A stretch of 64,000 nt of DNA from Auanema rhodensis. Taxonomy: Eukaryota; Animalia; Nematoda. The notes under the pieces were generated by a model. That model saw nothing but the letters and a program-made list of their open reading frames with translations. It was not told where the DNA came from and made no database searches. The translations under genes were made by a program, and so were the position numbers. Of this stretch, positions 294-53,812 are shown piece by piece (position 1 is the stretch's first letter; every line of letters starts with the position of its first letter). The stretch covers positions 14,260,001 through 14,324,000 of the forward strand of contig OZ059894.1 in assembly GCA_964057225.1 (NCBI GenBank), read 5' to 3'.

Positions 294-447
294 CACGTGC
301 GAAGTTCGGCTTACATTATGCAAATCTTTCTGATTAAAACTATTAAAGTTGATCTTATGCCTTTTCCGGACACGTGATATATCCTATACTGACTCTTTAA
401 AGTGGGCGGAGCCTTTTCTGTCACCCAGCCTGGCAAGCCACGCCTCC
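294..447 (+). promoter_or_regulatory. Cluster of candidate transcription-factor sites upstream of the microprotein gene
   Basis: CACGTG E-boxes at 294 and 371, octamer ATGCAAAT near 318, GC-box GTGGGCGGAG at 402, and GCCACGCC near 437, all in otherwise AT-rich DNA. Confidence 0.35.
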
Positions 448-1077
448 ATTCGGTAGTATTATTGGAATCAGACACTGAACAACACGCTCTTCAGTCATTC
501 TTTCATTTCAGTCTGTCTCCCTCTTTCTTCAAATATCACCTTCAAAATTCCCATTTTTCAATTCTTGTTTTATTTTTTAAAATATTTTCTTTTTTCATTT
601 GGAAATTATATCAAATGTTTACTGTATTGCAACAATCGTTTATGCTGGTTGTTACTCTCTTACTGACTGACAGACATCTAGTTATTCGCTTTAGTGGGAG
701 GGGTAGTTGGCCTATACTGCTTACCTTTCCCCGTATTAAGACGATAATCATCCATATTTCTTTCTTGAACATTCCAAACGTTTCCATATCCTTCGCTTTC
801 TTCGTCGTCTTTTTTGTCAAAATCAAATCATTCCCGAATATTGTTGTTAATGAATTAGACCAACAAAAGTACTATTTTTCTAATTTTTTTCGATTTTTCG
901 TGTATTGTATTGAATTTTCTTGTTTATTATCTTTTCTATTATTCTTAGAGTATTATCTAATTTCTTTAAATATATAGAAATCAAATTTATCGACGTGGTC
1001 ACGTCAATTCATCTACTACTCACAACTACCTACTCTACTTCTTCACTTAAATTCACTACTTTTCCTCAATTCTCAAC

Positions 1078-4000
1078 ATGTCTATGAAAAAGAGAAGCCT
1101 ATTTGGAAAACTGTTGAAGCTTGTCGGAAAAGGAAGTAAGTTACTATTTTTGTTTTACTAAATAATCAAAGCAAAAACTATTTCTTTACATTGATTTTTA
1201 GAATTTATAATCATTAATTACGTAGATATATCTATATTTCTTCTTTTTTTTCCTCTTTCAATCAAATTTCCTATATGAAAAAATGTTTTTCTTTATTTAT
1301 TTTTTAAAACAATATCTTCTTTTCAAAACAAAAGTTGATTCTTTTCCGTTGTCTATGCTATCTTAGTTGTCCATGTGGCAGCAAGAGCTTATCTTGAAAT
1401 TTCGTTCATAAAGACATCTGATACTGATGTCTGGCTGGTTATAAGCCATTCAATTTCTAAGCTCATCTAACACATTTTTCTTCAAACATATTGTCTTTTG
1501 ACAGTTTTAAGCTGATTGTTGGGAAAAAAAAAAGAAAAAGAAAATGAAAATGAAAGAAGATGAATAACAAGAAGTACCACGTGTTTTTAATAACGACCTA
1601 TCACAGCTTGGAAGCTGTTGTGCTTAGCTTGAAAACTTTTATTCAGCTTGTTTCCACTTTTTTGCTGACCAACATACTCTCATCATCTTTATTACATCTT
1701 TGTTTCTCACTCAATATCACGGATAATCCAACATACTTGTCACAGCATTCGTTTTGTTTTTGCGGTTTTTCAATCAAATTACTCTTCTGGTTCAAGCATA
1801 TTATGACCAGCATAATGATTGTCAGCTCTTCCGATGAGCATGAACATCCTGTTTCGCATCTGTCTTATCACCAAAAGATTTTTTTTGTTTTTCATCTCTT
1901 TTGGAATGATCTTTACGATCCACACCCTTTTGATTCGTAATATTTCATCATCTGACAAGTCTGAGTAGCTTCTGTTTCTCCTTTTTCGAACTATTTTTAT
2001 ATTTTCCTGACACCAAAACTATACCTTTCATGTCATGACAATACGAATAGGGGAATACTTGTATCACAAAAAAACATCTTCTGGAAAATTATTTGAGAAT
2101 ATGAGAATAAAGAAGTCAGAGAATCAGAGAAAGATACAAAGATCAGTTCATAGTTCAAAGAAATTTATTTTTATTCTTCATTCATATGCAACAACAATCA
2201 TATCTGAGCATCTGTTTTGAACGATTAATGGTCATTTCAATGTTCATAGCTTTATGCAGGAGGCATAATACGAAGAAGAAGATGAAGTTTTCAAGTTTGT
2301 TCCATGAGCAGCGAACCAATTTTCGAACTCTCGTACTTGCTCAGTCACACTCTCTTTCTCTCTCACTCCCTCCGCTGCCAGTATCAGCACGCCACAGCTT
2401 CTCCTTCAACAAATACACAAAAATCTGGTCTTCTGGCTGGCAAAGTATAACAGAAAAACTTTATGTTTAGGGTTCTTCTCATGTTCCCTTTATATCTGAA
2501 GTAGAAATAGGGAAGGCGCAAGAAAGCGCTTTCAGTTTTTTGAATTATTCATCTGACCACTGACCATTTAATATCCAATACTCTACGAAAACATCACATT
2601 TTCTCTGAATAGTGGTATTCTATTTTTCTCGGCCAAAAATAATTGTTCAGCAATTAATTGTCTCGAAGTTTTCATCACGAAAACCTTTCATCATTTTCGT
2701 CATTTTGTCTCATCATCGTACCAATCCCTCTCATGTTCAAATGACCTTTGTAGTGGTCTTGTATGATACGAAACGAAAACTCATGAAATTCAGAAGAATT
2801 CAGAGAAAAAAGCGGATGAAACTATAGAATCTGTTGAAAATTGAATAAAATACATTTGATGTTTAAACTGAAGATGCGGAACAAAGTCCAAGATAATTTC
2901 CCAATATAGTCCGTTCCTTACGTCGTCGTCGATGATCAAATCGTTCCCATCATTTAGAATTTGAAGGTCTTTAAAATCTTGCTTTTTTGATTTTTCAACC
3001 TGTTTCATGGATTCCTTTTTGTTTTTTTGTGTTTCTGACTGAAATATATAAAATAGAAAATTAACTTTTTCTACTAATAGTCAGTAAACGATGAAAGGTT
3101 AAAGAAACATAAAAATAGAAATATTCCATATTTAGAATATAAATTTTAATTTTGATTGATATATATTTGAAAATACAACACTTTCTATATTTATTATACA
3201 TTTATCATCTATTGTCTCTATTGAAATGTACTAAATTTACTTATAATTATATTCAATTAATTAATTCTGATCAATCATAAATCATTCCCATTTTGCAATT
3301 TTTTTCCGTTTTATCTTTAAAGTGAAATATAAATTTTGGTAAATTCATTAAAGCGGAAGAATAGAAAAGTTAATTCTTTGATAAACAATGAAGATCAATT
3401 ACGTTTTGTAGCATTATCATAGAAATCATTAGACTACAATCTAGGCTTAAATGTCTATTGTCAAGTTTTGATATGCATTATTTACTATGAAAATATCAAT
3501 GTTCTTCTATGATTTCTTTCTTTCTTTTTTTCATTTCTCTCATCTATCTCTCTCAATCATATGAACAATCGTCTGGTTTGGCTTCAAATTTGAAAAAAAA
3601 CCAGCTGAAGGGTCATCTATGGATTAGCAACAATTCAAGCACGTGATTGTAAAATAAACGAGCAGAAGTATTAAAACTAAAAATCAAATATCAATTTTCC
3701 ATATTTTTCTTTCTTTTTTTCTTGTTTCTCGAGATGCAAAATCAAAAAAAAACTTCGAGAAATATAAGTTCTAGAAGCTATGGAACATTTAATCTTATTT
3801 GATATTGTTTTTTTTATTCATTGTCTTCATCCATAAATTGATTACTCTCTCTCTCTCTCTCTTTCTCTTTTTCTTGGCATCAAGTAGACATAGAGGGAGT
3901 TTGCCGACTCTCCAATAGCATTTTTCGTTTTGTTCCCTTTTTCTCTTTCCAAGCTCTCCGATCTCTTGAACTGAGAATTCACAGGCCAACAACAATAACA

Positions 4001-7000
4001 ACAACATCACACAGGAACAGAAAGCTTCTACATAGTATTTGGTGGAACTGGCCATCACCAGAATCATCATCGTCGTCATCATCACCGTCATCTTCATAGT
4101 TAAGAGAGAGAGAATACACATGACAAGTAGAGGACTTTACTGAAAGAATGTAAGATAGAATAGTAAAAAGAAGAGAGAAAGAAAAGAAAAAAATAATAAT
4201 ATTAAAAGAATAGAGAAGAATCATACACCATCATCATATTACTATGTTGCTTCTAACGACTTCCCCCACTGTTAAACATCAAAAAGTTATAATTGTCAAC
4301 GGCTGTTTGACCGTTTCAAATATGAAATGTTTGACGTTGATTACTATTTACGTATTACTGAACTGATGTCATTATCGATATTAGCCTCAACGGGCAAGAT
4401 TGTCAAACGTGTATCACATGCACTATCTGACCAGCATGGGCAACCTCATGATTGAAGAAAGGACATCAGATGATGAAGATAATAATGACAGACTGTAGTC
4501 ATATTGCTCCTAAATTAATCTTTTTTGGTCTCCCAGCTAATGAATTTCGAAAAAGATGCGCGAAATTGACGTGAAAGATAATTAGTGCGTATTCTTAAGA
4601 AGTCACAAATCAAGAAGAGAAGTTTCATCTTTCTGTTTCTCTCCTCCAATGTTTCCACCTGTGTGACGAGTTTGATATTGTGACATTCTTTTCTTGTCAA
4701 TCACAATATTTGCCAGACTTTATCAATTACATTTACTATATTAATAACTAAGTTTTAGTGTTCATATTATACTCATAAATAGAAATTGTATTTGATACGA
4801 ATAGTTATCATGAGTTTAACTAGCAAACAGAGCACAATTATATAGTTTCTTATTTGAATTTCAGTAGTTGAAAATCAAATTATTTTGTTTCTAATTGTAA
4901 AAATATATTTTCATTCATTCTATTCTAACCCCTACACTTTTTTCGTATAAAAGGTGAGAAAGATAAACGATGAGAGCTCAATTTGACAAGAACTATTAGA
5001 AATATTCATATCTTTCCGTTTTGTTTTCATCATCAAGTTCTAATAATAAGGATTTGCTTCCGCCTCATATTTTACTCTTTACATTATCATCTTCAAACTC
5101 TTCTACGAACTATTATTAAAATATTATTCTTGGAAAGTTTCATGAAGATCTCTCGTATGAAGGAAACTAAAAAAGAAATAGAGAGAAGAAGTAAAGGAAG
5201 GATGGACACGAAAATTGGGTCAGAAGATTGAAAAAGGAAATGGAATCAGAGAAGTGAGATTGGCATCAAAGTATGCATTATATCCGTTGCCAAACGAAAA
5301 AGCATCTTACTTTTGCCTTTGAGAAAATAGAATCGAACAGAAACGATGACGTGATTCAAATGTGGATTTCATGCTTTCTTCGTACAGTAGAATTGGAGAC
5401 GAAACATGTAGAAGTGCTCGAAAAGGCAATTTTTCCTTCTCCTTCTCTCGATCATCAACATTCTCTCGCGCAATTGGACAGCTCATGCTTTCATTTTTGA
5501 AATAAGGTCCTTTTGTTTACTGAGGACTCTGTGCAATCCACTTGGTATGCTTCTCTCTTGGCCGAGAGACGAGCCATTGTATTGGAGCGGAACAAGGAGA
5601 TTGACTCAAACCTTTTCTATTTTCTCTTCTTCTTTTTTCGTCAACTGTTACATACAGGCTTCCGTATTTTGTTGGGACAACACATTTCCAATCGGCATTT
5701 CCGGATTCAGATGTGAGCCAAAAATAGGAGGATTCGTCAATCGTCCTGAATAAGTCAGCTCAGTGTGCTATTTCCGCTGACATCATCATAATGATTCTGA
5801 TCATCGTTTTTGTCACATTTGGTTTTCTGTCTCCAAACAGAATACAAGAATAGAATACGAAGGCTGCAGAAGGGCGGGGGAGGCGGGAGAAAGGGAGAGA
5901 AAAGGAGAAACAGTGGGAAAAATAGAGAACAGAGGGAGGACGAAAGGGGAGATTGGAAAAACATATTAATCAGCACTTTCACACCCAGGCATGATTCATT
6001 CAGAAGTACCTAAAGTACTTGAAAAGAAGGCAAATTTATGATTTTATTCGCTCAAACGGAAAAGGGACATCAATATCATTCATATCAATTAATCAGATCC
6101 AATTCAGATTATACTTTTACGATGTATTTACATAATTAAATGATCTAAAAGTATAATTATTACACTTTTTACCCTATTTTTATTATTATTTTTTGATATG
6201 ATAATTCATTATAAGGACATATTTACTATTAGTATATCAACCAATACATCATATTTTTCTAATTTTCATCGTGATTTTCTTCGAAAACACATGAGAAACG
6301 ATAAGTTTATTCTTGGAATGTTGGAAATTAAACTTCTTTAAACTGCCATTTTCCTCTATTACTCCCAGAAGTGAAGGAAAAACTTTTTTTTTTCTTTCAA
6401 GCGAGCTGTTGTCCTTTGAGAAATTCATAAATATATGTAATACATTTAAAAGTAAGATTTATGAATCGAATGAAAAAATAATTTTTCTTTCTGGGACATT
6501 CTCTTGTCTAATTTTATAATTTTCATTCAAATTATCAATAGTAAGCAATAAGCAATTTCGACTTTAACCTGTTGACTTTAAATATTTCTTTTCACGTGCT
6601 CTTACTTAATATTCTTTTTTTCTTTTCTTTTTCTCTCCCTCTCTATCTATCCCTCTCTCTCTCTCTCCCTCTCTCTCTCCCTCTCTCTCTCATACCCTAA
6701 ATATTTATCCGAAATTATTCTGTTCTTTCTTTTAGATTCAAATTTAGATGTTATGAATAACAAGGCAATACCAATTAAATAAATTCTATTAGAATTACAC
6801 TGATAATATAATAAATGAAATGGTCATTTTTGTAAATTAACAATTAGCAAGTTGAAGTACTAGTATATTGTTATATATTTACTTTGAAACAACGTCATCA
6901 CTTCGGAAGCGTGTGATTTTCACTGTAACATTGAAAGGGAGTGAAGATAATGTAAAACTAAAGAATGCTCGTCTGTACAAAGAATACATGCTTAAGAGAT

Positions 7001-9637
7001 GTATACACAAGCTTTTCTTTGATTTCGCTTTTCTTTCGACAGTCTTGACCTTCTTGACACACGTACAAAGAGAACATCTCCCACAATTCATTCGTGTTCT
7101 TTGCTTGCGTGATTTTTCTTATCACAAGGATAAAAACGAGTATGTCAACGTGTAGCTCTGTCTGTTTAGATTTGGTAGAACTTGAGCTGTAAAATACGAT
7201 TGACGGCTTGCCGATCAAAAGCTTGTCAAATGCGACAACTGGCCCGAAGGGACAAGCAATTGCTGATGAGACGTGAATGCTCACACATATCATCATAATA
7301 TTCAGACAGATTGTCATAACTATTTTATGATAAATGAAAAATAGACAGCTGTTTTTTAACATTGAGATGAGGATTACTTAGTCAGACTTTTTGAACTCAG
7401 CTGTGGGGGGGGAATCGATCCCAGGAGAAGTGCAAACATAACATTAACACGTGTGAGGCTATAACATTTCTGATTGTCCATCCGTCAAAACAACAGATAC
7501 GCTATGATAAGCAGTCTAAGATGATCAAAAATTGATTCAAACAACGGACAATAAGCCGAAGTATAGAATGAGAGGGAATATGGAGTACAAGGGAATATAT
7601 TAGCTACTGAAACAACATGTCGAGCTTTTTGGTGAAAAATAGATCAAAGCTATAGTTTAATTTGTAATTATGTTTCTAACAAAAACATTTTTTTGGTATA
7701 TGTATGTATGTATGTTTTTTGATCCACAATAGTTCCTATAGTCATATTCCAAGAAAGTTAATAGTGACGACATTGAGCAAACAACATGAGCAAAAAACCT
7801 GATTATCATATAGAAAAGTTCTAACAAATCTCTCAAGTTAGCTGAGCAAACTAATTAAGTTTGTTTTTTGAATTCTTCTTCTACACCCTGAGGGATCTTT
7901 GTCATTTTTCTTTCATTTTCAATTCATATTCTTTAAGTAAAAAACTTGAAACAAACATTGAAGAAAATTCTTTCTAAATAATATATCTTTTCAGATCAAG
8001 TTCAATCTTCTAAGCCATGCCTTGCACAGATATACGAGGAGCGTAAGAAGCAACGTCAACGGTATGTTTATTAACTTTTTTGGTTCTTACGTGATTACAA
8101 AAACTGAAATCCTTCAACAAATTGAAAATTGAAAACTACCACATGTTTCTACTTATGCTAATTTTTCCCATTCCTTTACGTCACACACGTACATTTCTAT
8201 TTTTTTCCAAACAAGAACGGTTGTGGCTAGTTTACTTGATACTATTTATCTGTTTCCTTTTTTTCAAATATAGCGTTGGGGTCAAATAATGTTTTGCGGA
8301 AGTTTGTGAGGAAATTGAGTGTCATGAGTTTTACTCTTAACTGTAATTTTTTAAACTTATTATCGAATCCGAACATTAATATTAATTTTTTTAAATTTAA
8401 AATATACATCATATGAGCTCAAAATCATATCTATACGAGCTTAATCTACATGTGAGTGTGTACATAATATAATAAAATGAAAAGATAAAAATATAATCTT
8501 TCATTTTATTTTTCTCTCCATTTAATCAAATGATTTTAATTAAATTTTTTTGAAATAAAAATTGAAATATTTTATAATATGTATATATAGTTATATACTA
8601 TATATTCCTATTCTAGTAAAACTATTAAAGGGGGAGAGTAACATCATTTGTATGAAATATGATTTAATCATCTTTCATGCAAAATTTTGCATTGACTTGC
8701 GTTGACTTTTTATTCATAATTCTTAGAAAACGAATGACCAAAAGTGAAGAAAGTTATGATGGATGCTAGGAACTTGAAGCTAATTAGAAATTTGTAATTA
8801 CATAAAAGATGCATTCATTGCATAGATGTATATGTACACATACATATATAAAGCAACTTCTATGTATTTTTCTGATATTTTCAAGAGAATCCTGATGAGA
8901 TTGCAGGAACATGAATACGACATCATGTGAAATCTTCTTCTTTTGAACATTGTCAATAAACTATTACAAATGAACAGCATGGTGATAATATTAGATTAAA
9001 TTTTATGTGATTTTGAACGAGGTTGATAGATAAAAATTGATAAAATCGAAAACCAGTTCGAAAACGTGAGTTGCGAGTTGAAAATAAGATTTTATAATAG
9101 GGAAAATAACTATACGGTAAATAGTCACATATAATCCGTCAAAGTTTGAATAAAAAATATAAAAAACAAGTGATTTTTGAATTTTATAACGTTTGAGCTT
9201 GCACTTTTCTTTATCATTTTCATTCGTTTTATCTTTTATAATGTAAAGTATATCTTTTTTTTACAAAAGAATTAACTGATAATTGATAACGAGTTGCAAG
9301 AAAAGTAATATTCTCGAACATCTTTCAAAAATCAACGATTTTGTGAAGATGATGAACAGTACTTGTGAAACATCAACGAACATATAATTGCAAAAATATT
9401 ATTCTTGGAATCTCAAAGACCACAATGTTTTCTTAAGCGCATCATATTTCTATAATTTTTCATGCTTTTTTGATGTCCGTAAGAACATTCATTTGTCACA
9501 AAAACCAAAACTTGAACAAAACATTTCATCAAACTTTACAACATTTGAGTTAATGTTTTTCTTTCAGATCATCTCTTTCATCTCATCTTTCACACATCGA
9601 ACCTATGCCAACTATTCAAGAAGAAGATGAAGATAAC
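1078..9637 (+). CDS. Uncharacterised 64-aa microprotein, 3 exons (1078-1135, 7995-8061, 9568-9637): MSMKKRSLFGKLLKLVGKGNQVQSSKPCLAQIYEERKKQRQRSSLSSHLSHIEPMPTIQEEDEE
   Basis: Consensus splice sites (GGAA|GTAAGT, TTTTCAG|, CG|GTATGT, CTTTCAG|) join in matching phases (1, then 2) into one open frame ending in TAA at 9635-9637. Not in the ORF track because each exon is under 60 codons. Confidence 0.75.
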
Positions 9638-11445
9638 CTCTTTGTGGTGGAAGACATGGTCCAAGTCTAAACTATGTTGTCGTCATTGTCGTCCTCCTCG
9701 TCGTCACAAACTCAACAACGCTATCATCAAAATCGGAAATTTTCTATGCAATTATAGTCTCTAGAACTACGTCTCCTTTCATCTGCCTTTCCTGAATTAC
9801 TATTTCCTTATCGTCATTCATATACTTGTCGTAATAGTCGAAATCGTGAACGCCATTGCTTCTTCAACTGCCTTTAAGAGCATACAGAACAACAACGAAG
9901 ATGAAGGCTTCTTAGATTCTTGTTGCTGAGGAGAAAGAAAGGGATGGACAAAAAAAAGAAGGAAAGGAAGAAGAAGAAGCTATGACGTTTGTTTGTTCAT
10001 ACCAAGCCTTCATTAACAATATGCGAATGTTTACAATTATATGGATTTGACAACTCCGGGCTGATGGCTGGTCATCAGTCATTATAAAGGCAGATTCCTC
10101 ATCGATTCGACAAACTTTCATTCTATTCCATGTGTAAAATAATACTTTTTGCTATTTTGCAACTTAATTATCTCAGAAAAAAACCATTCACCGTTAGCAG
10201 GTGAAAATTGAGATATATTTTTTCTTGCAACAGACCATTAACAAGAATTTATATTTATTGTATCGGGTTCCTCTGGTTTTCTAGTTGTTCTGCTGCTTTG
10301 CACATATTACGGGTATTTTTCTTGTTGTTTAATAAAGAAATTTGAATAATAAATAAAGAATTTATATAGACTAATAAAATTATCACAATTGATTTCGACG
10401 ATGTAGCTAAATGAACAACACTAAGAAGAAACTCAAAAAATGTACTATAAGACCATATCGAACAGACTAAGGCGGTTTTTACCTGAATAATAAAAACGGA
10501 AACACTAATAATACACAACTGATGAAATAAACAGGCAAGTGGTTCATCTACCAATATCAAGAATGATTTGTTCTATACTGTATTTTACTTTCCATAACAG
10601 AAGTTGGATTAACTCAAGAATATCCCATATTATTCTCTAATTGCAGTTAAAGGAAAGATATATAAAATTGTGAAGAACTCGAACATGGATTTTAGTAGAA
10701 GTTGGTTAACAAGATTTCTGTACAAAGAATAAAAGCAAAGGCAACCCGTGCTGGAACACCTGTAAATAGAACGATCAATCTATTATTGTATTCAACAATT
10801 CGTGGAAAAGTTGAAAAAATAAGAAAATAAAAGAGCACAATTCATCTGACGTTCAATGTATTTAAACATTCCTTTATCTATCTATGTTATACTGAGGACT
10901 GTAGGAAAACATTATGAATTTACTCGAAAGGGCATGCAAATGTATAATAGGTGAGTAAATTGTCATAAACAAAATTACAAAAATGTCTTTTTGAATTGAA
11001 TCTAGAACTGTGGCGTACATATAAAAGTAAATATCATAAGGTAGAATTGATAACCTCATTCTTAAGTGAACTTTGCTCACGAATTTTACCAAAACATCTT
11101 TTGTTCACTATACATACCAGTTAAACTCTCAAGTACTGGTTCTTCCACCCCACCTCCCATCCACGTTTTCAGACAAGAATTTTGTCTTCAACAAAAAGGG
11201 TAAGATAGATGAATCCCGCAATTTAAACTATGTTCAAGATATAAGTCAAAAATTCAAATTCATGCTTCAACTTTTCAATCTTGAAAATCTATAAGACGAG
11301 AATGCCATCATCCAAAGCACTTCAGTGTATGAAAGTTGCAGTGCTAATCATAATTTTTGAAAGAAAAGATGAAAATAGCAACTAGATTAAAGAAAGAATA
11401 GTGGACAAAAAAATAAAGTGAAATTGAGTACATGTTCACTTACAA

Positions 11446-11944
11446 TTAAGAGCTCTTGCTTACAATACTGAGGGGTCCCTCAAGGTAAGTAGCAAGAGTC
11501 TGCAACTTCTTACGAACTAAGCCTAAATTGGCATTCGGTGTTGCCTGAAATATTATTTTTCAGATTAATCGCAAAAGTAGAATAACCTTCAAAGCAATAA
11601 GCATTGTGGAGACTTTCGTGCAGGCGAGAATGCCATCATCCAAAGTTAGGATGGCTTCACGTAATTCATCCTTACCTAAAATCAAGAATTAGGGAAATAT
11701 TAATAGAAAAAATACCTTTTCGATCGAAAGAATCCCATATGCTTGATATAAGAGCAGCAGTGACATTAGAACTATCTTTACCTTCTTTATCACCACTATA
11801 AGCTAACAACAATCCTGAAATAAACCATATTTGAAAAATAAAATGATAAGATAACCTACCCTCACGGTTAAAAAGAAGAGCTCCGGTAACCTCAGCAGTA
11901 TTTACCTGACCTAACACACCCACTAAAGCTTTTTGCCGCAGCAT
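11446..11944 (-). CDS. lmtr-2: Ragulator complex subunit LAMTOR2 (roadblock/LC7), 4 exons
   Basis: Spliced translation MLRQKALVGVLGQVNTAEVTGALLFNREGLLLAYSG...VTAALISSIWDSFDR...LDDGILACTKVSTMLIAL...LGLVRKKLQTLATYLEGPLSIV matches the LAMTOR2 pattern. TTTTTAAG acceptor just before the ATG. Confidence 0.93.
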
Positions 11945-12134
11945 TTCTTAAAAAAAAACATTTAACATAACACAGTGAATTGAAATATCTGGTAGGAGGA
12001 GAACCCCATTACAAACAAAGAAAACTAAATAGTTAGTTTAGTTTGAAACACGTAGAAATGATGATCATAGTAACAACCATGTACAATTGATAAACGAAAA
12101 CATTACGAACAACAATAATAATATATTTGGAGAT

Positions 12135-12678
12135 TTATTCTGTCCATCTATGACCACAGGACGAATTCATACAAACATAATATAACCTCATCTCTTCCTG
12201 AAAAAAAAAGATTTTACAGAAAGCAATTTAATCAACGGTACCTCAGCTCTTCTAGTTTGAGCTTGGAAGAAAACTGCCAAATTATGGTTGCATTTCGGGC
12301 ATGGATGATCTTCTGTCTTAGGTAGCGTAGGATCATACACTACATCAGCGCATATTTGAGTCAATTCACTGAAAGTATCATGAAACATTTTAACCTCCAA
12401 ATTTGTAATCATACTCGACTTCGTGCATAAGTTTGTTAACATAAATACAAGGATTTTCCGCTAATTGTTTATGTTCACAATTTCTGAAAATACAATTTGT
12501 TGTATAAATATAAAAAAACAAAACATACCTACAGGAATACATCAACTGTCTATGTTCCTTATCTTCTCTCGGATAGAGCATATTATTGCTTAAAAATGTA
12601 TAAATTATAAATTGACAATGAAACGATAATTTACCATTCTGGACAAAATTTAATACCAACGAATCCTTGGTTGCTCAT
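12135..12678 (-). CDS. rpb-9: RNA polymerase II subunit RPB9 (POLR2I)
   Basis: [26 protein letters not shown]...CRNC...[15 protein letters not shown]...[32 protein letters not shown], with two Zn ribbons. Confidence 0.97.
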
Positions 12679-52044: not shown

Positions 52045-53812
52045 ATGACTATCTTAACCGTAAGTTCGAGAACAGCTTCGGCATCTATCCGATTGCTGAA
52101 TACTTCAGCCTCTCGTTTTTCAGCGTATGATTGTATTTATTAAAGAAAATCATAATAATATTTATTATTTTTAGAAAGCAGACATGTTTGTATGATTTAC
52201 ATAAAAAACACAATGGAAAGTTGGTACCATTCGCTGGTTATGACATGCCTGTTCAATATCCCGATCTTTCTGTAAAAGATTCAACACTCCATACTCGTAA
52301 ACATCTTAGTATTTTTGATGTCTCTCATATGCTCCAAACACACATTGTCGGAAAAGACAGGTTATAGTTGACCCGATTCACAATTTTTAAAAAATGTTTT
52401 GATGACTTTTGTGCTGTGAACAATTTGATTTTAATATTTAAATCTAGTTATTGCGTTTGTTTTCATAATGTAATGTTTTTAGAGAAAATTTCATAGAAAG
52501 TTTAACTACTGCTGATGTACAGGGTTTGACCCCTAACAGTGGAACACTATCAGGTGTGTTAAAGGAAGGCTACTGGTTTTTTAACTTCCTTTTTGTTTCA
52601 GTATTCACAAATGAGAAAGGAGGTATCAAGGATGATTTGATTGTCACTAAGACTGATCAAGACTTCATCTACATGGTAACCAATGCTGGTTGTATTGATA
52701 AGGATTTACCATATCTTCAAGTACGATACATTATTCAATGTTCTAATTCAGTATTTAATCTCATTTCTTAAACATTTTCAGGAAAATGCTGCTAAGTGGA
52801 GATCACAAGGAAAAGATGTTGAAATCAAAACTCTTGATGGTAGAGGATTAATTGCTGTTCAAGGTTCGTAATGAAAATTTTATTGAAGTTTCCATCTTTT
52901 TCAGGACCTGAAATTGCTAAAGTTCTTCAAAGTGAAACTGATATTGATCTGAGTAAACTGACTTTCATGAAAACAGCTATTGGGAAAGTATTTGGAATTG
53001 AAAACTGTAGAGTAACTCGCTGTGGATACACCGGAGAAGATGGTGTCGAAGTAAGTTCCAAGGGAAATTTATACTAATGAACATGATATCTTCAGATTTC
53101 AGTTGATCCTGCTCAAGCCGCCACTTTGGTTGAACGTCTTCTTGAATCCAAGGTTATAGAATGATATCTCCGTTTAACTCACCTTTGCTTCTTAGAACGG
53201 AAATGTTAAGTTAGCTGGTCTTGGAGCTCGTGATGCCCTTCGCATGGAAGCTGGTTTATGTCTCTATGGCAATGATATTGATGAAGGAACAACTCCTATT
53301 GAAGCTGGTCTTGCTTTTGTTGTCGGTTTGTCTTTCTCTTTTTTAGTTAAAACAAAACAAAAACCCTTGTTTCAAGCTAAGCGTAGACGTGAAGCAATGG
53401 ATTTCCCTGGAGCTGAAAAAATAGTTGGACAATTGAAGAACAAGAATTGGCCAAAGAGAAGAGTTGGACTGATTTCTGATCCAGGCAGAGCTCCAAGAAG
53501 TATATCGTTACTAAGACGGATATCTTGTAATACTATGAATAATTTCAGCTGGACTTCCCCTTATCGACCCTATGGATAAGTGTGCCATTGGTTATGTTAC
53601 TTCTGGTTGCCCATCACCATGCTTAGGTTTGATTTATTTACGAGGGATCATTAAAAATAAATATTTAAGGAAAAAATATTGCTATTGCTTATGTTGATAA
53701 GCCATATTCAAAAGATGGAACTCAATTTATTGTTGATTTTGGAGCTAAACAATCCAAAGTTACGGTAACAAAGATGCCATTCGTAAAGACCAATTATTAT
53801 ACAGGAAAATAG
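52045..53812 (+). CDS. gcst-1: Glycine cleavage system T protein (aminomethyltransferase), mitochondrial
   Basis: [84 protein letters not shown], and VTKMPFV. Confidence 0.97.

Follow-up and report, generated by a model that had tools for sequence, protein, structure and literature searches.

Does the genome of the nematode Auanema rhodensis hold, in three tiny coding exons spread over 8.6 kb, a gene for a microprotein that docks with the B56 subunits of the phosphatase PP2A? Such a gene had been proposed from the letters of a 64,000-nucleotide stretch of DNA (contig OZ059894.1 of assembly GCA_964057225.1, positions 14,260,001 to 14,324,000, forward strand; the whole stretch is called the window and is numbered from its first letter), in what we refer to as the sequence-only reading. 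We found that the microprotein gene is real, as indicated by RNA splicing, by orthologs and by a very low ratio of non-synonymous to synonymous divergence (dN/dS). Its sequence places it as the Auanema ortholog of the uncharacterised Caenorhabditis elegans gene T27E4.7, and as a new member of an annotated, unstudied nematode family. The proposed docking motif, of the form [LM]xxIxE followed by acidic residues, lies in the best conserved block of this family (EP[M/L]PTIxEEDE), fits validated B56 ligands and, judged on the alignment, is conserved in the way a B56 ligand would be expected to be; docking itself is a tentative prediction.

Gene structure and transcript

The gene lies on the forward strand of the window and consists of the following features (nt, nucleotides).

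1078..1135, forward: coding exon 1, 58 nt, holding M1 to G19 and the first base of N20; it encodes MSMKKRSLFGKLLKLVGKG, the basic amphipathic N-terminus
1136..7994, forward: intron 1, 6859 nt, GT..AG, phase 1
7995..8061, forward: coding exon 2, 67 nt, holding Q21 to Q41 and parts of N20 and R42, with the invariant core SSKxCLAQIYEERKKQRQ
8062..9567, forward: intron 2, 1506 nt, GT..AG, phase 2, skipped in the contigs of 4 of 4 runs
9568..9670, forward: coding part of exon 3, 103 nt with the stop counted, holding S43 to V75 and the stop TAA at 9668-9670
9605..9631, forward: candidate PP2A-B56 docking motif MPTIQEEDE, codons M55 to E63, reading [LM]xx[ILV]xE with acidic residues at motif positions P7-P9
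9671..10365, forward: 3' untranslated region (3'UTR), about 690 nt; AATAAA stands at 10348-10357, and the contigs of four runs place the transcript end at about 10357-10371

The splice sites and their in-phase joining were as proposed. Exon 1 opens with the ATG at 1078 and is followed by the donor GTAAGT after 1135; exon 2 stands between the acceptor TTTTCAG before 7995 and the donor GTATGT after 8061, and exon 3 follows the acceptor TTTCAG before 9568. The codons split at the two joints are A plus AT (N20) and CG plus A (R42), with the reading frame kept, and the exon-wise translations are MSMKKRSLFGKLLKLVGKG, QVQSSKPCLAQIYEERKKQRQ and SSLSSHLSHIEPMPTIQEEDEDNLFVVEDMVQV, the last ending at the stop. 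The predicted sizes of 58 and 67 nt for exons 1 and 2 stood, and the 70 nt predicted for exon 3 fell short. A product of 64 residues with its stop at 9637 had been expected, terminating in MPTIQEEDEE; the frame there reads GAT AAC CTC, with AAC at 9635-9637, and runs on to the TAA at 9668-9670. The product is therefore 75 residues long and ends in ...MPTIQEEDEDNLFVVEDMVQV, with 12 more residues following MPTIQEEDE.

Transcript evidence came from four small sequencing runs of one 2019 study, which amount to one independent source and were aligned to positions 4700-10699 of the window. All four contain 100% of the words sampled from 9568-10350; no other runs were found. The runs are RNA-derived, although their record is silent on the matter. 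Each run yielded a contig of about 1 kb that covers 7995-8060, skips 1506 nt bounded by GT..AG, and continues from 9567 to 10357-10371, so that the exon 2/3 joint falls at 8060/8061^9567/9568 in all four runs and the predicted 8061^9568 is exact. In the part of the contigs that precedes 7995, the last 30 nt are identical to the end of exon 1, ...GTCGGAAAAGGAA, in all four runs. Because the contigs carry both the exon 2/3 joint and the end of exon 1 before 7995, the two predicted junctions are confirmed: the three-exon gene is transcribed and spliced as proposed. The microprotein gene is single copy in this genome, where searches with exons 2 and 3 singly found no paralogs.

Two further observations concern the introns. 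Low-depth RNA contigs (depth 2-4) from 2 of the 4 runs cover 8646-9441 of intron 2 and probably represent unspliced precursor. Intron 1 contains, at about 6600-6697, a dispersed repeat of about 90 nt with a tandem period of about 34 nt, dozens of copies of which lie on other chromosomes; the rest of intron 1 is single copy.

Sister-species ortholog and purifying selection

The LAMTOR2 gene that converges on the microprotein gene in the window served as a synteny anchor. At the LAMTOR2 locus of the sister species Auanema sp. JU1783, an annotated gene of 6.6 kb occupies the same convergent position and encodes a 75-residue product without a Pfam family (protein P0009, "unnamed protein product"), with the same three-exon model. 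The exon peptides of the window were identical to this protein at 18/19, 21/21 and 31/33 residues, or 72/75 overall, the differences being L13M, M72V and Q74H. P0009 was retrieved with the open frame L005:12043-12177(-), which comprises exon 3 plus 12 intron-encoded residues. In full-length searches P0009 stood as a proxy for the window product, and the window exons were searched singly.

Between the DNA of the two species only the exons and a few short blocks are alignable; the introns are not. Synonymous sites are near saturation, with 29.5 differences at 45.8 sites (pS 0.64; Nei-Gojobori counts summed exon by exon), including 6 synonymous changes in exon 1 and 8 in exon 2, against 4.5 non-synonymous differences at 173.2 sites (pN 0.026). 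Because dN/dS is about 0.02 while the introns do not align, we conclude that the open reading frame (ORF) is translated and constrained; by this comparison it is under strong purifying selection.

The T27E4.7 family in clade V nematodes

A word search with P0009 returned proteins of 73-76 residues in Necator, Cylicocyclus (four paralogs), Parelaphostrongylus, Ancylostoma and Caenorhabditis brenneri, with E values from 1e-28 to 1e-13. A cluster look-up added C. elegans T27E4.7 (NP_505353.1, UniProt Q23055), which belongs to the C. brenneri cluster, together with C. remanei/briggsae, C. tropicalis and C. japonica, and A. duodenale, Haemonchus contortus/placei, Heligmosomoides and Nippostrongylus. 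Orthologs are thus annotated in more than 14 clade V nematodes, all of them uncharacterised, "hypothetical" or under meaningless automatic names, and the idea that the gene is hidden and easily missed by gene finders does not hold, since annotated orthologs occur in many nematodes including the sister species and C. elegans. The orthologs of the more than 14 species are 73-75 residues long and share the same start and end regions; some longer database entries (90, 100 and 126 residues) owe their length to insertions or extensions missing from the other members.

C. brenneri and Auanema sp. JU1783 agree in the positions and phases of the introns (N20, phase 1; R42, phase 2), and in Necator the boundaries of exons 2 and 3 match (exon 1 was not recovered). 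By these comparisons, the protein sequence and the positions and phases of the introns are kept across clade V nematodes. C. elegans T27E4.7 itself belongs to the same class of 73-75 residues, shows about 66% full-length identity to the JU1783 proxy and has both introns at the same positions and in the same phases; T27E4.7 and its orthologs share with the protein here the identical blocks GNQVQSSKxCLAQIYE.RKKQRQR and SHIEPMPTIxEEDE. The last 12 or so residues, in contrast, are ...NLFVVEDMVQV here, ...FTTYEEYSRI in strongylids and ...FSMAAECR in Caenorhabditis.

Database searches beyond the family gave little. No Pfam family matched the protein at E<=10, the PDB sequence search returned only noise (E=2), the ESM Atlas gave no usable match, and Rfam gave no match on the window. 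When the 33-residue exon 3 peptide was compared by phmmer with 1.84 billion representatives, the single match was a spurious acidic one in a protein of 1857 residues; because the family was later found through synteny, this blank result reflects a false negative of a short query and not the absence of relatives.

Protein anatomy

We examined an alignment of 16 proteins, consisting of 15 orthologs and the JU1783 protein standing in for the window product; all statements on invariance refer to this set. Conservation is high over residues 1-63; after them come 12 or so residues that differ from lineage to lineage. Among the invariant residues are V16, Q21, V22, C28, L29, Q31, E34, R36, K37, K38, Q39, S47, S50, P54, P56, T57, I58, E60, E61, D62 and E63. 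AlphaFold2, run on the family alignment as a single-chain model (mean predicted local distance difference test, pLDDT, 68), predicted helices at 4-19 and 25-42, the latter with the best confidence, and a short helix at 45-49; the segment 50-65, which holds the motif, was modelled without helix or strand (pLDDT 54-72). These predictions bear out the basic amphipathic N-terminus and helical core of the sequence-only reading: the predicted amphipathic helix 4-19 is basic and has a hydrophobic moment of 0.41.

Within residues 4-19 a Ser stands in the context K-[KR]-[KR]-S-[FL]-F, and a K-[KR]-[KR]-S-[FL] context fits a PKC-type site. The effector domain of MARCKS is a membrane segment of the basic/hydrophobic type, and the segment here is similar to it in being rich in Lys/Arg, in its Phe/Leu residues, in the Ser of PKC-type context (K-K-R-S-L-F or K-R-K-S-F-F) and in its predicted amphipathic helix. 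It differs in that the protein has neither an N-terminal Gly for myristoylation nor sequence homology to MARCKS, and its membrane binding is only putative. We infer from sequence features the membrane association and phospho-regulation that had also been proposed. In such a scheme the basic amphipathic helix 4-19, with the invariant Cys28 as a possible acylation site, would tether the protein to a membrane or some other acidic surface, and the invariant basic helix 25-42 could bind a further partner, giving a small adaptor of two helices that is otherwise extended.

The candidate B56-docking motif

The block at residues 53-63 is essentially invariant. Motif position P1 is M in all but one Cylicocyclus paralog, which has L; P4 (I), P6 (E) and P7-P9 (EDE) are all invariant, and P5 (position 59) is free, being Q, L, M, F or V. 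The motif is therefore kept in all 16 proteins, alongside the orthologs and the dN/dS below 1 that the sequence-only reading had suggested looking for. Two B56 loci of the PPTR-1/2 type in this genome match Pfam PF01603 above cut-off. In C. elegans PPTR-1/2 the pocket for short linear motifs is reported to be well conserved and is engaged by BUB-1 (PMC7787666).

M55-P-T-I58-Q-E60 matches the pattern [LM]xx[ILV]xE that was obtained by mutational scanning of two B56 ligands (PMC12102759). One validated ligand that it resembles is ADAM17, in which 759-MDTIQE-764 binds B56alpha with a dissociation constant of 7 uM and the I762A substitution abolishes binding (PMC7327492); it shares M at P1 and T-I-Q-E at P3-P6 with the motif here, and the acidic run here resembles that of LDTIQEEE, an affinity-improved form that binds B56alpha at 0.9 uM (PMC7327492). 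ADAM17 differs in having Asp instead of Pro at P2 and in being a large transmembrane protease whose motif serves its own dephosphorylation, whereas the motif here lies within a 75-residue protein without another domain. One of the two scanned B56 ligands, AXIN1 (...LPTLNEDEE..., peptide 235-SGYLPTLNEDEEWKCDQD-252; PMC12102759) has the same Pro-Thr at P2-P3, E at P6 and acidic P7-P9, but L/L in place of M/I at P1/P4, and is a large scaffold protein. Residues 282-287 of C. elegans BUB-1 carry an LxxIxE motif, so that a nematode B56 uses the same pocket and motif class (PMC7787666); BUB-1, however, is a kinase whose motif becomes active once Cdk1 phosphorylates P2, and no Ser/Thr-Pro stands at P2 here. 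The engineered LxxIxE "B56 inhibitor" (Kruse et al. 2020; WT/3A), a tool for displacing partners from B56, is likewise a small polypeptide that occupies the B56 pocket, which corresponds to the proposed decoy mode, but it is artificial.

Collectively, these comparisons lead us to predict, with a confidence that stops a little short of an even call, that the T27E4.7-family block docks PP2A-B56. The extended EP[M/L]PTIxEEDE segment would then enter the LxxIxE pocket of a PPTR-1/2-type B56 subunit, and the protein would either recruit PP2A-B56 to its own location and to its neighbouring Ser cluster, RQRSSLSSHLS, or act as a competitor that fills the pocket. A further step, which we consider possible but rather doubtful, is that the T27E4.7 microproteins are natural ligands dedicated to this pocket, anchors or competitors that steer where and whether B56 holoenzymes gain access to substrates, probably in neuronal cells of clade V nematodes. 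WormBase enrichment of T27E4.7, as cited by PMC12193031, is in AVF, I2L, XXXL, the anchor cell and sensory neurons. In the papers searched, no natural microprotein ligand of the B56 pocket is documented.

PP2A-B56 picks its substrates through one conserved pocket, and its known ligands are motifs inside large proteins. A stand-alone, conserved microprotein whose motif is near-optimal would represent a new type of regulator, acting as a localiser or as a competitive inhibitor, and the first endogenous small-protein regulator to work through the B56 LxxIxE pocket; it would be directly testable in C. elegans, and would assign a role to a conserved single-copy gene of nematodes, hookworms and Haemonchus included, that genome publications go on listing as unannotated. 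Should B56 not be bound, the result would still be a clean annotation of a 75-residue T27E4.7 ortholog with RNA support and evidence of selection.

Alternative explanations

Several points weigh against B56 docking. Conservation covers almost all of residues 1-63 and so does not single out the motif. The B56 motif calls for neither Pro56 nor Thr57, yet both are invariant, a hint that further or other constraints act here. The motif class was picked after the sequence had been seen, and by our estimate from typical residue frequencies [LM]xxIxE arises by chance in about 3% of 75-residue proteins. Met at P1 binds more weakly than Leu in ADAM17 (PMC7327492), the AlphaFold2 confidence is moderate, as its mean pLDDT indicates, and the only paper we found that names T27E4.7 describes a conserved single-copy gene without functional annotation (PMC12193031).

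The first two of these points also favour the strongest rival, namely that this is a real T27E4.7-family microprotein whose C-terminal block serves another partner or purpose, its likeness to B56 ligands being coincidental. We give this explanation slightly less than an even chance. The block might serve sorting adaptors as an acidic cluster phosphorylated by CK2 (T57-x-x-E), or belong, with helix 25-42, to a larger interface for binding. The consensus of CK2 is S/T-x-x-E, which T57-I-x-E60 with E61, D62 and E63 fits; K37-K38-Q39-R40 fits a monopartite nuclear localisation pattern, and the family, structure and atlas searches offered no match to guide the choice. Set against this, invariance at P1, P4, P6 and P7-P9 with a free P5 reproduces exactly the [LM]xx[ILV]xE pattern, Pro-Thr at P2-P3 recurs in the validated AXIN1 and M.TIQE in ADAM17, and the remaining motif readings are not conserved.

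Those readings were tried one at a time. A TQT-type ligand of the dynein light chain LC8, which needs a conserved [TVI]-Q-[TV] anchor, was rejected since Gln59 is found only in the Auanema lineage, with L/M/F/V elsewhere, and the +1 residue is Glu. A clathrin box of the form L-phi-x-phi-[DE] (LFVVE) and a C-terminal PDZ ligand (VQV) are likewise confined to the Auanema lineage, falling in the last 12 or so residues, which vary by lineage. TRAF2-type [PSAT]x[QE]E and the YxxPhi of strongylid tails fail on conservation in the alignment, and GoLoco-like VQSS, calcineurin PxIxIT and PP1 RVxF were rejected on the alignment or for want of a Pfam match.

It is very improbable that the three exons are part of a larger gene with more coding exons upstream or downstream. 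The contigs do hold 132-169 nt before the exon 1/2 joint, which leaves at least 111 nt of 5' untranslated region or upstream exon, and a conserved block lies about 600 nt upstream; an in-frame TAA, however, stands 27 nt 5' of the ATG with no ATG between, the TAA at 9668-9670 is followed by the 3'UTR and a poly(A) signal where the contigs end, and the orthologs of more than 14 species all keep to 73-75 residues with the same start and end regions. That the transcript is functionally non-coding, or its 75-codon ORF a chance product of spliced RNA, as an mRNA of about 1 kb with 228 coding nt and a long 3'UTR might suggest, is in effect refuted by the way the sequence has diverged from the sister species (29.5 synonymous and 4.5 non-synonymous differences, unalignable introns); Auanema, Caenorhabditis and the strongylids also share the ORF, with its length and intron phases.

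Non-coding conserved blocks

Two non-coding blocks near the gene are conserved in the sister species.

364..505, forward: conserved single-copy upstream block, 84-91% identical to the sister species amid unalignable DNA
10248..10291, forward: 3'UTR element of 44 nt, 43/44 identical in the sister species though synonymous sites are saturated

The upstream block contains TTCCGG-CACGTG (with the E-box CACGTG), GGGCGGAGC and GTCACCCAGCCTGGCA, and ends in the initiator-like CTCTTCAGTCA; about 580 nt separate it from the ATG here and about 280 nt in the sister species. We regard the block as a candidate promoter or start region; alternatively, it may be a non-coding exon that precedes the coding ones. 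The 44-nt element may bind a microRNA or a protein, or may be tied to the 3' end of the convergent LAMTOR2 gene, an option we consider because its reverse strand reads AATAAA; its predicted RNA fold is nothing unusual (z -0.49). Neither block was found in the Caenorhabditis or Necator loci, and their conservation is seen within the Auanema lineage only.

The sequence-only reading had also placed the gene under complex transcriptional control. The introns do not bear this out: they are mostly single-copy but unconserved with the sister species. The gene spans 8.6 kb here, 3.5 kb in Necator and only 1.1-1.2 kb in Caenorhabditis, and because the same gene differs in this way we take intron size to follow genome size. 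Conserved intronic enhancers were sought and rejected, the small matches within the unalignable introns being non-collinear repeats.

A perfect inverted repeat, GACGTG-gt-CACGTC, lies at 992-1005, about 75 nt 5' of the ATG, in a region that the RNA contigs may cover. It has no counterpart in the 560 nt before the ATG of the sister species, where the only ACGTG/CACGT is the E-box of the upstream block.

Neighbouring genes and other observations

The convergent neighbour is annotated as follows.

10380..11944, reverse: LAMTOR2/Roadblock gene (lmtr-2 type), whose ORF 11675-11944(-) matches LAMTOR2 proteins and PF03259, with its ATG at 11944

The best database match of this gene is that of Auanema sp. 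JU1783. A separate RNA contig starts at 10347-10396 and runs onward on the LAMTOR2 side, and the 3' ends of the microprotein and LAMTOR2 transcripts abut within about 25 nt. By their locus tags, the orthologs of Haemonchus and Parelaphostrongylus adjoin LAMTOR2 or lie three genes from it; those of Caenorhabditis have different neighbours and are not beside LAMTOR2. In Ancylostoma ceylanicum the exon peptides found no match within the 10-kb flanks of LAMTOR2, the ortholog lying farther off on the same contig. Directly upstream of LAMTOR2, an RPB9-type zinc-ribbon gene is present in both Auanema sp. JU1783 and A. ceylanicum, and 11585-12678 of the window aligns with the sister region of the LAMTOR2/RPB9-type gene.

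Elsewhere in the window, the ORF 53244-53579 (forward strand) carries residues typical of aminomethyltransferase, the T protein of the glycine cleavage system, and is probably an exon of that gene. In the genome at large, C3:6.74-7.10 Mb holds a large tandem array of SL1-like RNA genes, with at least 51 scored copies at 54-62 bits, all a little below the Rfam gathering score of 75.

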